Assembly (NCBI GenBank): GCA_020536535.1
Contig: JAHLWZ010000609.1
Span: 1 to 43,877, forward strand
Source: Pelomyxa schiedti
Taxonomy: Eukaryota; Protista; Evosea
DNA: 43,877 nt
Reading direction: 5' to 3'
Shown here: piece by piece, positions 2,663-35,640 of the stretch
How positions within the stretch are numbered: the first letter of the stretch is position 1
How the letters are laid out: every line of letters begins with the position of its first letter
Notes under the pieces: model-generated
Told to the model about the DNA's origin: nothing
Database searches by the model: none
Seen by the model: the letters and a program-made list of their open reading frames with translations, nothing else
Position numbers and translations under genes: made by a program

Positions 2663-5055
2663 TGTAGAAAAAAAAGACCTCAGAGAACAAAGGCCCACAG
2701 AGATAACAGAGAAAATGTCTCACATTGTCAGTGAGGCACCTCTAATTAACACTCTCCGAGAAAAAAAAGTTCCCTTGCTCTTCTCCTCATGAGACAGAAG
2801 CCTTCCTCCATAAGCAAGTCTTGCGCAAACAATATTTGGAAAGTAGCAATACCCTCGGACCTATTCTCATGCAAATGAAAGAGGTTTTACGGAGGGCAAG
2901 TATTGGCGGAGAAAACCAGTTTCACCAAGTCACCACGGAGGTGAGCCAGACAGCTTTCCAATATGGGCAAGAGGAGTTGAATTCCCTCGCACTTGGTGAT
3001 GACTTGACAGCCAAGTAACTTTCTACTCTAAGACAATGAGCTAGTTTGCTGTGCTGCACTAAGGACAAGGAAGCCAACGACTTTTTGAACCGCCTGAAAA
3101 CAGAGGCCGTTAATCAGACTAAGAACGTATCTGAGAAGGCATTAGAAGCTCGGGAGTTACTACCTGTCACAGAGGCGGTCTCTGCAAAATGTCATGTCAC
3201 TCGAGGCAGTATTCCCAGACGAACTGCAAGTACAATGCAAGGCAGTGGCCACCTCGGTGCAACGGCTTTTCATCTCAAAAATGGCAGAACTGAAATCAGC
3301 AACTGAAGTTAGTGGAAAGATGGAGTCCGTATGCATGCTAGCCCAGGACATACACAAATTCGCAAAGCAAGTGATTTCCTCCATCTTGGAGGAAGGTTTC
3401 GTCCACACCTCGTTTACTGAAGCAGGAGAGTACCTACTTCATAGAATGAGAACGCTTGAGGCCAACAGTTCCCAAGCAAGAAAACTGCAAGATCTTAATT
3501 CCGACCTTGTGACAGTCTGTGACGCACTTGAGATATTAACTGCAACCTGTGACCTGCAGTGGCCAGAAGAGTTCGATGTATCCAGCGTCAAGAAGATGAG
3601 ATATAAACTCCTCGGAGATCTTGAAGCAACATTGAAGGGAAAGCAACACATCATCCAACATAAAATTGGGATCTTTGGGTGGAAAGCCTTTGAAAAAGTG
3701 CACCAAGATTTTTGTGTAATTCGTGAAACAGGCAAGACTATTTCTGAGGTTCGTAGTCATCTTCAGGTAACACTGAAGTTTCTTGGCGATAATCTGGCCC
3801 TTACCTGCAGTACTTTGGCTAAAATCACATCTGATTTATCAAAGCATCATGTAAAGATATTGCCGAGCTAGCTAAGATCTTTCGAATCCTCACCGGCAAT
3901 GCCAGTTGGTTGGAAGAGATCCCTTTGTCACAGGGTCACCTTGGCAGTTGGCTTCAGAGGGATAGCATCTCTTGCCATATAGACAAACTGAAATTGCAGC
4001 TGCCTGTGCATTTGGACCTTTTTGACGAAAAAACCAGGGGAAGCATTGCCGCCATTATAGAAAGGCCTAGAGATTCTTAAGCACCTGGAGGATGGTGCGG
4101 ATGGGGAAACTTCATGTATAACAGAAGAAAAAAAAGCCGCTCTCTTATTGGATACCAAAGAGATTCTTAAACCACTAGTTACATATATTCAACGCCGATA
4201 TGCTGGCACGGGTGACCAGGAACATCTCCCAAAAGGCTTTGATTGTTTTGCGGCCTCGTCCTCGCTCAGCTTCCTCACCTGTTGATCTACAATTATTACC
4301 TTCAGACAATCATAGCAGCATCCTTCTTCACGACTTTCGCCAAGGCTTTCTGAAAGAGTCCCTAGAAAGACTTCAGGTGCACTATACCGCATCAACGGCA
4401 GAAGGCTTGGCCAGTTCTTTCCGCAATCTCCCTCCAAGTGAGATTTACAGTCAACTGAGCAAAGTGTTCTCAGAGGATGTTATGTTCCAGGGCACATGGG
4501 ATAAAATACAGAGCATGCTGCTAAAGAATATTCCCAGACTGGCCGATGGTCTCACTGGCGTTTTTCACCTCCTTCCCGAGCATCTCCAGCGTATGCTTGA
4601 TGATGCTGTCACTTTGTTCCTCTCCAATGAACGCATAAAGCGGCTCAATGATCCAACTTACGACGAGACCCAGCGCATCATGACCCAGATGGAAATGACT
4701 TCAAGGAGACACTTCAAGTCTGTGAGAAACTCTCCGATTCCTGCACACAAAACAACCTCCGGAATCCGTCCCGAGGACCGGCAATACGCGGCTTTCGTCA
4801 GGCGATACTGAAACTCAAGCAGGCTGCTTTGCGAACCTGAATGTTCCAGCCTGGCGAGAGCACATAGAGTCCCTGTACGACGCCAAGTTGAAGACTTGTC
4901 AATGCGGCGACTACCAAAGACGCAGAGTGGCAGAGCAATCACTGCAGGACGTTGTACTGGTGCTGAAAAGAATGTATGCTGAACTCTATGAGCGCGCCAT
5001 GGAGGCATCTCTTCTGTCTTCCGATATGAGTGAAGCAGGCCTCCTTGTGGGATGA
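2663..5055 (+). pseudogene. Decayed intronless helical-protein gene, paralogous to part of the GTPase-vWA gene on the opposite strand
   Basis: A chain of helical ORF fragments is broken by in-frame stops (e.g. AK*LSTLRQ*ASLLCC near 3016-3040) and frameshifts. The segment NLPPSEIYSQLSKVFSEDVMFQGTWDKIQ...LPEHLQ matches KNPPKDAYERF/QVFSTNLECKETWDKIE...LPEHSK from 6075-6290 (-). Confidence 0.6.
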
Positions 5056-5200
5056 ACTGTTTAAGTTACACTGTATTTACTACCACTAGTAAACACCACA
5101 CGAGCGTGCGTAATCGAAGGAAACTTATTGTAATTTTTCCTACCAGCATAATACAAACTTCTTTTACTTTGTTGTGGTAGTTCTTTTCTTTTTATAAAAC

Positions 5201-5414
5201 GGGGCACTCCACAGGGGAGTGCCCTCTGTCAAAAATCAGTGGGACTTGTGAACGCCTGCCTCCAAGAGTGCTTGAGAGGCATTTCAAAAAATAGGTGTGG
5301 AATAGCGGGATTAGAGCACAGCGTTAGCCTCTAGGACTCCCTTTAAAAGAGTTTCCACGAGATCGCCGTGACAGACTTTCTCCCACACCGAAGCGTCACT
5401 CCCTTAGGTAGATT
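5201..5414 (-). ncRNA. Candidate Sm-class snRNA, U1-like variant (~215 nt)
   Basis: An unpaired 5' end AAUCUACCUAA is followed by a long closing helix, GGGA-GUGACGCUU with AGGCGUUCAC-aag-UCCC. There is an inner 9-bp helix GGUGUGGGA/UUCCACACC and a hairpin GCCUCU...GGAGGC with a GCACUC loop. The Sm-site-like GAUUUUUG (5237-5230) is followed by a perfect 9-bp 3' hairpin (5224-5202). G-U pairs favour the minus strand. Confidence 0.5.
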
Positions 5415-5467
5415 GAGTTTTCCCAACCACCACCGGTTCGAATCTGAACGGGTTCCCCCCACTTCAA

Positions 5468-5475
5468 TTACGGGA
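5468..5475 (-). promoter_or_regulatory. DUSE-like upstream element TCCCGTAA about 61 nt upstream of the candidate snRNA
   Basis: One mismatch to the Dictyostelium small-RNA upstream element WCCCAYAA, at the expected spacing of about -60. Confidence 0.25.
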
Positions 5476-5547
5476 CAATCAATACTAGCTTTCACGTTTT
5501 CCGGTAACAAAAGAAAATTGTTTCATCGAAAAGGAACTTTCAAATTT

Positions 5548-8500
5548 TTAATGGGTTTGTTGAACCACATGCAAAATAGCCTCGGTGACTACATCAGTGA
5601 GCTTAGCAGCACCTGAGGCAGCATTTACATCCAACAGGTCACACTTGCCCCCGCTTGCAGTGGCAATTTCCGTGAAGTTGTGTGTAGCGGGCCCGTATTT
5701 GCTTGAAGCCCACAGTGCCTCGCCTCCGTAACTATGGCGATAGGTTGCTATCTGTGCCGGGGTCTTGGCCGGAGCGTCGGCGATAGGAATCACCTGTGAG
5801 TGCCATCTTTTTGGCTTCCTCGTTGGCGTGCCATAGGCCGAGCTCTATGGCTTCTTCCCAGTCTCCTCCGCCTTGAGCATTCATTTTGTCCATGAAGGCT
5901 CGTAGTTCGTGGTCCAGGGTGATGTTTGTAGCACTCCATCTACTCCGCAGTCATAGTCGCTGATACCACGAATTGTATCTGGAAGGATTTCCGCGGGCAT
6001 TTATTCTATGTAAGAATAGCAGTTGCACGTTCTTAGTTTTAATATGTGCGTATTCCCCTTCTAGGGCGTGCTTCGAGTGTTCTGGGAGATACTTCAATGC
6101 AAGATCAAAATCTCTGGTCAGTGCAGCTCACATCTGGCCGAGTATCTGTTTCTTTGATTTTCTGAAGTTCAGCTCGAAACCCCTCACTATCTCCTCAATC
6201 TTGTCCCAAGTTTCCTTACATTCAAGGTTTGTAGAAAACACCTGTGGAACCGTTCATACGCGTCCTTTGGTGGATTCTTGAAGATGTATTGGCGGGTGTC
6301 ATTATTTTTGTAGAATTCTTTCAGGGTTGTTAGGGAGTTGGCTGGGCTCGCGGCAAAGTTGTCCAAACTCGTTCGGGCAGTGGGAGAGCAAGTAGAGCAC
6401 TTGTTCGTTTCATGATTTCCATTTTTTGATTGGCTTCCATATAATGACAACTGTAAATGGAAGCATCCACACTTGTCATGGCATTTGTGACTCGCGAAGA
6501 TAGCTCCAAGCATGCAGCGGAAATGGCTTCATGGTAAGAATCCTGAGGAATCGAAGAACTCAAAACAGGGGAAGTCGTCGAAGCTTGAGAAGTTTCACTT
6601 CGAATAACTAAGTACTGTTGAAGGCAGTTCAATGCTTCTTTAATATTATCCAACCGTGACTTGATATCAGTAATTTGGCTTAACCATTCATTAGAAATTT
6701 CTTGGCCAAGTAATATAGCCTTCACCTTGGTTTCATTGCATACATCCATAACAGTGGTTTCGAGTGTTCTGGTGCTGAGGTTGAGTGTTGCTTTGTTTCC
6801 AGCATCACTTTCTTCAAGAGTACGCAACAAGAGAACCAACTGCATCCATTCATGTTTTGTCAATGCGTCCATAGCATCTTTTGCGGTTTGTCCAAGTGCT
6901 TTGCCAACTTCAGGCTGATACTTGTTTCTTATCTCCTTAAAATTGTCACCTGAGAAGGTGCACACAGCATCTAAACGACAAAGTGAGTTAGCATTGTCAA
7001 GTTGTGCTTGAAGGCTTCTGATATCGCTGGATCGCGGGTATTGCGCCATCTTCGACAATAACTCAAGGGCAAACCCTGAAATTGCATTGTTGGTTTCTGA
7101 TAGTATGTTTCTGTGTGATCCGAAGAACTCAAAAATGGAGGAGTGCTTTTCTTCCAAAATTTTAATTTCCTGAAGGTAACTGATAAGAGTAATTGCGTCT
7201 TCTGAGATTTTAGATAGAGGTGGATGACCCTGTAGATGATCTGAGATATTGGAGAGAGCCTGCTTTATCTTTGTTATCAAAAAATCAGTGTACTTAGTGA
7301 GAAAGATCTCCATCTTTTCTTTAAGCTGTGTGCAGTGTAATTCATCACGCAAGCCACAACGGAACTGGGATATAGCTTTGATGAAAGCCAATAATGCAGC
7401 AGCTTTTGAGGCATTTTGCTTCTCAAATTTATAAAGAATTCCCTGTTTTTCAAGGTAATCGCACTCTCTGGTTTTGTCTAGTATAAGATTTTCGAGTGCT
7501 GCAATACTTATCAACCCTATCTCACCAAGAAGCTGTCTTTGCTGCTGTGATAACTCTGGAGAAACAGCTAGCTGCCTATAGTGTGTGATCTCACGTTCTT
7601 CCGTGTCGATAACTCTGATGCACTCGTCTTGTTGTGCCTGGAAATTGACTCTAATCTGATTTTGTTCGGTTTGCGACTGATTGTGCCAATATGTGAGTTG
7701 CTTCAAAGCCGAAACCCCGTTTTGTTTTAGAAAGGCTAACTTTGGGTCAGCTTGGGAGTTCCACAGGCCTTGTTGTGCAATTTCGTGGTACTTAGTAAGC
7801 CGCATAAAATCTCTAACTCACTTTGAAGTACAGCAATTTGTGTTGTATCAATAAGTCGGTTCATCCTATAAGTATTAGCAGCAGAGTGGAGAGTATTTAT
7901 AGTACCAGCTATCACAGTGAAATCAGAGGCTCCATTATTGCTCAGACTGTCTTCAGCAGCTTGGAAAGCACTATGCACATGTGAAGTGAAGTGAGTCTTA
8001 AGTTGGGCCAAGCTCTCCTCAATGAATTGCACTTGAAGATGTTTTTTGAATATTTTGGCAGTAACCTCTATTTTTATCCACTCCTGTTTCGCCTCTTCAA
8101 AGTTATTCTCAGTGATTAACTTCCTTACTGCAGCTAGGCTCTCCTCTACAGATTTAGTGGCTTCTGCCACTAATTCGTCATACTGTGTCTTCACATCAGG
8201 AGACGCTGTACACAACAGAGCCAATTTAGAAAGCCGAATATTGTTGTTCGATTCTGACAATAGATCTTGTTGGGAACGAAACTCACTGACCAGTTTTAAA
8301 ACTTGTTCCGTGAAATACTTCCAAAGTTGGGGTGAGTAATTATCGGCACCCTGCACATGAAGGATTTCACCCAAACAGTCATCACTGCCAGTCAGAAGGT
8401 TTAGAGCTTGCATGAAGAGATCGAGATCTGCCTCCGTGGCTACGTATCCCTCTTTCATCAATACTCCAAGGTAATGTGAGCCAGCTTCAAGTTGGCGTGT

Positions 8501-35487: not shown

Positions 35488-35640
35488 AAACTTACATAAC
35501 GTGGTGTGGGTTTTCTCCCACTTGTGCGCCTTTGTGGAAGGAGTTGAAAGGCTGGTCCCAAAGCGAAGAGTGTGGTTGTGGGCACGAAGTTGGTTCCACT
35601 GTCTCGATTGAAAATTTGAAATCCTCTCTGCGTAACAGGA
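35488..35640 (+). other. Element colinear with the 5201-5414 candidate snRNA; U1-like 5' ACUUAC; may instead be the SKI2 promoter/5'UTR
   Basis: Shares the ordered blocks GGUGUGGG, GCG, GUGGAA, AAAGG, GUCCYARAG, UUCCAC and UUUGAAAU(G)CCUCUC with the 5.4-kb element. Confidence 0.25.

Follow-up and report, generated by a model that had tools for sequence, protein, structure and literature searches.

A four-copy snRNA-type gene family with a U1-like outer frame in Pelomyxa schiedti

The window analyzed here is a 43,877-nucleotide stretch of the Pelomyxa schiedti genome (assembly GCA_020536535.1, contig JAHLWZ010000609.1, positions 1 to 43,877). It carries, on the minus strand, one of four copies of a snRNA-type gene for a predicted RNA of ~213 nt that matches no known RNA family. 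The features of this copy are collected in Table 1. The locus had originally been predicted to encode a divergent U1-like RNA of ~215 nt, and all of the motifs listed in that prediction are present at their minus-strand positions, with the RNA running from 5414 to 5202 (213 nt). The published assembly of the species comprises 52.4 Mb in 5337 scaffolds, with 149,016 introns (PMC8887013).

The element lies between two genes with broken reading frames in the assembly. These neighbors had been described as pseudogenes, a status that does not follow: introns are abundant in this genome, and in a DNA run the right-hand gene has insertions that change its frame, at 5904 (10-nt) and 6243 (1-nt). Given these insertions, another allele of this frameshifted gene (5552-6513, minus strand) may be less broken. 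It encodes a GGGDWEEA motif, which is typical of vWA-domain proteins, and one tested piece of it had no Pfam match. RNA contigs cover the upstream part of the right-hand gene. Elsewhere in the window, a 40-nt GT-AG intron (7866-7905, minus strand) is confirmed by an RNA contig and starts with GUACUA, a weak donor.

Table 1. Features of the element and its promoter in the window.
Feature	Position	Strand	Remarks
DUSE-like upstream box CCCGTAAT at -60	5467..5477	-	homology of all four copies begins here
CG dinucleotide at -26	5439..5440	-	at -25 to -27 in nearly all U1, U2, U4 and U12 promoters examined
Predicted RNA	5202..5414	-	213 nt; start inferred from promoter spacing and ctc|A context
Single-stranded U1-like 5' arm	5404..5414	-	11 nt, unpaired; 2 nt shorter than those of the paralogues (AUACCUACCUA type)
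Closing helix around three-way junction	5241..5403 (5403-5392 with 5256-5241)	-	one compensatory change among copies
Long irregular hairpin where U1 has SL1	5294..5389	-	96 nt; closed by 9-bp helix 5389-5381/5302-5294
Internal Sm-like site AUUUUUUG in junction	5285..5292	-	single-stranded (unpaired probability 0.93-0.96); in 4/4 copies
Short hairpin, GCAC(U/A)C at tip	5257..5281	-	similar to the GCACUC found in SL2 loops of U1 in this genome
Canonical Sm site AUUUUUG	5230..5236	-	between closing helix and terminal hairpin
Perfect 9-bp terminal hairpin	5202..5224	-	one compensatory U-A to C-G change among copies
A-rich tract 3' of RNA	5180..5200	-	also after U1, U4 and U12 genes; this copy's homology to its paralogues stops here

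The element has the snRNA-type promoter of this species, as expected of an Sm-class gene. In this genome, most U1, U2, U4, U12, and U6atac genes have CCCAYAAT, or a box close to it, between about -58 and -64, and a CG dinucleotide at -25 to -27 is usual in all of these except U6atac. The DUSE-like motif noted upstream of the element (TCCCGTAA at 5475) is confirmed and matches the U1, U2, U4, and U12 promoters. Three of the copies have the box CCCGTAAT at -60/-61 with one mismatch to the consensus, while the fourth, on contig C734, has a more degenerate box at -59; the CG is at -26/-27 in all four. Where other snRNA genes have an A, the element's box has a G. The offsets of box and CG agree with those of ~40 snRNA genes of this genome. 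On the basis of these offsets, the RNA start was placed at 5414; its ctc|A context is also seen in this genome's U1, U2, and U4 genes.

We find that the predicted fold of the element (-80.2 kcal/mol) lies well beyond dinucleotide-shuffled controls (z -3.3; 0/200 shuffles equally stable), which had been proposed as a check; the paralogue on contig C4 gives z -2.6. In the prediction, the 5' arm and the two Sm sites are single-stranded, and a three-way junction appears in three copies and in the consensus. The unpaired 11-nt 5' end (5414-5404), the Sm site, the perfect 9-bp terminal hairpin, and the internal Sm-like site (5292-5285) were all recovered as first described. Other elements of that description were only partly borne out. 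The closing helix exists, although in this copy it has 12 bp, bulged and arranged as three 4-bp segments (5403-5392/5256-5241), and the proposed ~13 bp are reached only in the four-copy consensus. A 9-bp helix does close the domain said to be branched, yet the domain itself is predicted as a single hairpin. The U1A-like loop is likewise present in sequence but not as an open loop: in the predicted fold, CAAG pairs with CUUG, leaving it mostly closed to 4 nt, and opening costs ~5 kcal/mol. The GCACUC hairpin scores 4.7 bits, which is not significant alone; one copy has GCACAC, and the loop is partly closed in the predicted fold. The bulges of the long hairpin also contain two branch-site-like words, GCUAAC and CUAAU (5328-5323 and 5314-5309, minus strand), that are invariant in 4/4 copies.

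A search for paralogues yielded three further copies, and BLAST and a covariance model agree on exactly four in the genome (contigs C609, this window; C987; C4; and C734). The copies are 87-88% identical. Among the three close copies, the proportion of variable sites is 9/202 in the RNA body; it is higher in the promoter (9/62; p=0.017) and in the downstream DNA (29/208; p=0.001). The body is thus less variable than both the promoter and the downstream DNA, which indicates that purifying selection acts on it.

This bears on whether the family is functional at all. The copies might represent a non-functional or selfish unit, that is, a rearranged snRNA gene recently copied to four places, whose similarity would stem from duplication rather than selection. 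Such an origin would fit the boundaries of the homology, which in all four copies starts precisely at the promoter box, beyond which the upstream DNA is unrelated, and which extends through 250-800 nt of common downstream DNA in the C987, C4, and C734 copies. It would also fit a promoter box that is off consensus. Covariation among the homologues, which had been put forward as a test, is present but weak: there are two compensatory pairs, both on the branch of the C609 copy, and 32/500 shuffles reach as much. We nevertheless consider a dead unit unlikely. Conservation is significantly higher in the body than in the promoter and the downstream DNA, the copies retain 98% of pair cells and number only four, and the predicted fold is clearly more stable than those of shuffled sequences. 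On their downstream side, three of the four copies share an AT-rich segment (4770-5930, 3349-4130, and 2617-2870 in the three extracted loci).

The relationship of the element to U1 is one of frame rather than membership. In common with U1 (RF00003 and the three classes found in this genome), it has the promoter, an 11-nt arm with ACCU, the closing helix, and an Sm site a few nucleotides past the closing helix followed by a terminal, SL4-like hairpin; its GCACUC hairpin resembles U1 SL2 in sequence. The arm is predicted to be unpaired, has an invariant ACCU, and is complementary to a 5' splice site, as in U1. The Rfam scan of the window, the element, and the three paralogues (to E=10), however, returned nothing relevant, RF00003 included, and the suggested check with the U1, U1_yeast, and U11 models gave no match. 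A U1 model of our own, built from 19 of this genome's U1 genes, gave the element 4.5-7.2 bits, compared with 92-110 bits for held-out U1s. The element is ~50 nt longer than U1, has a three-way instead of a four-way junction, and has a short SL2, a second Sm-like site, and a variable arm on a conserved body. It lacks the 10-nt U1-70K loop of SL1 (GAUCANNAAG), which is invariant in this genome's U1 genes; the GAUC of the long hairpin (5364-5361) sits in a stem/bulge, and forcing a 10-nt loop open there costs 10 kcal/mol. SL3 is absent from the predicted fold, although SL3-less U1 genes also occur in this genome. Because the U1-70K loop and SL3 are missing and a second Sm-like site is present, we regard the element as U1-framed but not as a U1 member. 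It may work like U1, but it fails the defining U1 tests and should not be classed as U1. Of the original label, the snRNA-type gene with an Sm site therefore stands, on promoter, copy number, and body conservation, whereas "divergent U1" does not survive the structural tests. A new Sm-RNA class, the alternative offered with that label, is a possible reading.

The ordinary U1 genes of this genome are themselves diverse. They fall into three arm classes (U, A, or G at position 5), and most of the genes are arranged in divergent U-type/A-type pairs. Contigs C1151 and C918 each carry a head-to-head pair of U1 genes of ~140 nt without SL3, with arms ending in A (AUACAUACCUA and AAACUUACCUA).

The other established snRNA families are represented elsewhere in the genome, where matches to U1 (25), U2, U4, U5 (18), U11, U12, U6atac, and MRP were found. 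The U11, U12, U2, and U4 covariance models each match other loci and not the element. On contig C859 (1501-1637 of the extracted locus), we also observe a second U12 gene, whose promoter is intact and whose 3' domain is shortened. An unrecognized member of some other known class (telomerase RNA, spliced-leader RNA, U3, RNase P/MRP, or a U5 variant) would share the generic noncoding RNA promoter of the element; a short ACCU repeat occurs in the consensus arm, and a long hairpin with an Sm site loosely recalls U5. This explanation is improbable, since nothing in Rfam matches to E=10, U5 and MRP lie at other loci, and the element has neither C/D boxes nor a conserved AG|GU donor near its 5' end. 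The invariant loop 1 of U5 (GCCUUUUAC), present in this genome's U5 genes, is absent from it. For telomerase RNA, the arm varies among copies where a telomere template should not, and the DNA examined contained no telomeric arrays. An origin from a tRNA or SINE was rejected, as no tRNA was found and the B-box-like word falls at the promoter CG at -26. A candidate second element at 35488-35640 in the window was also rejected: it has two short words in common with the first, no -60 box, no model score, and background-level alignment.

We considered a role as U4atac because this RNA was not found in the genome, either by the Rfam model or by complement pattern, while U11, two U12 genes, and U6atac are present. 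The element has an Sm site, and its GCUAAC could pair over 6 bp with U6atac. Nevertheless, we detected neither a helix of >7 bp with the pairing segment of U6atac nor a 5'-end stem II in the element, and there was no RF00618 match. Co-folding with U6atac gained -4 to -8 kcal/mol, similar to non-cognate controls, compared with -18.8 for U4/U6; this test was relied on because a whole-molecule duplex test was insensitive even for U4/U6. The element also has four copies, whereas each of the other minor snRNAs has one or two. Identity with the missing U4atac is thus the least probable of the explanations considered. In the U6atac gene itself (contig C841, 1501-1619 of the extracted locus), the catalytic core is preceded by AGCCGAGAGA; the human RNA reads AAAGGAGAGA at this place. 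The box for the minor 5' splice site in P. schiedti U6atac looks altered, while U11 keeps AAAGGG.

We next turn to the arm, which had been predicted to read AG|GUAGAUU. This target applies to the C609 copy only, whose arm has lost two bases; for the family consensus the target is AG|GUAGGU, and no two of the four copies have the same arm. The paralogue arms begin AUACCUACCUA, AUACCCACCUG, and AUCCCUACCUA. Over the C609 arm, the DNA run does not differ from the assembly, although this run may be the source sample. The ACCU and the C at the +4-reading position (C5) are invariant in 4/4 arms. In register with ACCU, the arms would read GUAGGU, GUGGGU, GUAGGG, and GUAGAU, with the C opposite intron +4. 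The consensus arm matches U1 arms except at position 5 and at the last base, where three U1 genes of this genome also have an A. Among the ordinary U1 genes retrieved, position 5 is U (8), A (13), or G (2), and C in none, so that the three ordinary classes read A, U, and C at +4 by Watson-Crick pairing. The element family would thus supply the missing +4G letter.

Two observations weaken the view of the family as a +4G reader. First, the consensus arm pairs with AG|GUAGGU at -14.6 kcal/mol, and canonical U1 pairs with GUAGGU by wobble nearly as strongly (-13.7); the C609 arm reaches -10.6. Second, variability within this RNA is highest in the arm (3/11 sites, against 9/202 in the body; p=0.018). 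The true U1 family shows the reverse pattern, with 1/11 variable sites in the arm and 135/160 elsewhere. A variable arm fits target diversification or a vestigial arm alike. Moreover, U2 also starts with AUACCU, so only ~6 arm letters are informative. Donor words with G at +4 were not overrepresented in 235 kb, a search of low power. An apparent excess of AG|GUAAGU and AG|GUAUGU words was due to the U1 genes themselves and disappeared after masking.

Taken together, the most likely reading, though one we hold tentatively, is that of an Sm snRNP built on a U1 frame. The genes would form a small Sm-class family, probably transcribed by Pol II, whose RNA would retain the outer frame of a U1 ancestor (free arm with ACCU, closing helix, Sm site, and terminal hairpin) around a remodeled core. 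The RNA would presumably acquire a TMG cap, load Sm proteins, and assemble into an snRNP without the usual U1-70K site. Its arm would pair with 5'-splice-site-like sequences that have G at +4, promoting or blocking splicing as an auxiliary or regulatory reader alongside the three ordinary U1 classes. A more ambitious version seems doubtful: a U1-derived snRNP class without the U1-70K site, bearing two Sm rings and a diversifying +4G-reading arm, that completes a four-letter panel of readers.

The next most likely explanation, a possible but less favored one, is a functional orphan Sm-class snRNA. Here, the conserved body would do the job, for example as a scaffold for Sm proteins or splicing factors, and the arm would be a vestige or a shared initiator. 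This would account for the high identity of the body among the copies (91-99%, loops included) alongside an arm that changes about as fast as the flanks, and for a second Sm-like site kept in all copies. It explains less well why C5 and ACCU are invariant in 4/4 arms, and why the arm has the length of a U1 arm and its position before the closing helix. Orphan Sm-class RNAs do have precedents. Nematode SmY is a lineage-restricted orphan snRNA with an Sm site. The Drosophila snRNA:LU, as described, is also lineage-restricted and has an snRNA promoter, an Sm site, and flanking stem-loops like the element (PMC4053861). It is 116 nt long, its description in that account includes neither a U1-like arm nor two Sm sites. 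Neither SmY nor LU matches the element in sequence or through Rfam.

Re-coded U1 arms are a precedent for an auxiliary +4G reader. Altered splice-site-reading arms are described for the U1 of other amoebae (ACAAAC in Entamoeba, ACGUAC in Mastigamoeba, and ACAUAC in Physarum; 10.1101/2022.06.08.495308). The Entamoeba and Mastigamoeba candidates, unlike the element, keep classical hallmarks, with four stem-loops and both 70K and U1A sites in Entamoeba, and an ACCUAC arm or a remodeled core is not among the features described in that source. Human variant U1 (vU1) genes resemble the family in being multi-copy and U1-derived, with altered sequence and uncertain splicing activity, but they are members of the U1 family with mostly very low expression (PMC10870369). 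The element is unalignable to U1 beyond short motifs and, unlike vU1, appears to be under purifying selection on its own body.

RNA contigs from three single-cell runs of one sample cover patches of the neighboring gene and not the element; such contigs show presence only. Poly(A) priming is typical of single-cell RNA libraries of this type. Smart-seq2 is cited in the genome paper (PMC8887013). For presence-only contigs from poly(A)-primed libraries, missing coverage is thus not evidence of absence. In metagenome contigs, an exact 20-mer had 0 matches and a loose pattern had 27, none of which scored with the family model.

Spliceosomal snRNAs are among the most conserved eukaryotic RNAs, and new ones of the Sm class are seldom found. 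Should the RNA described here be expressed, it would represent one of two things: a U1-like reader that has two Sm sites and whose protein-binding core has been rebuilt, or an orphan snRNA of a new class. Since three U1 classes also occur in this genome, P. schiedti would then allow one to test directly whether a specialized panel of snRNAs reads loose intron starts.
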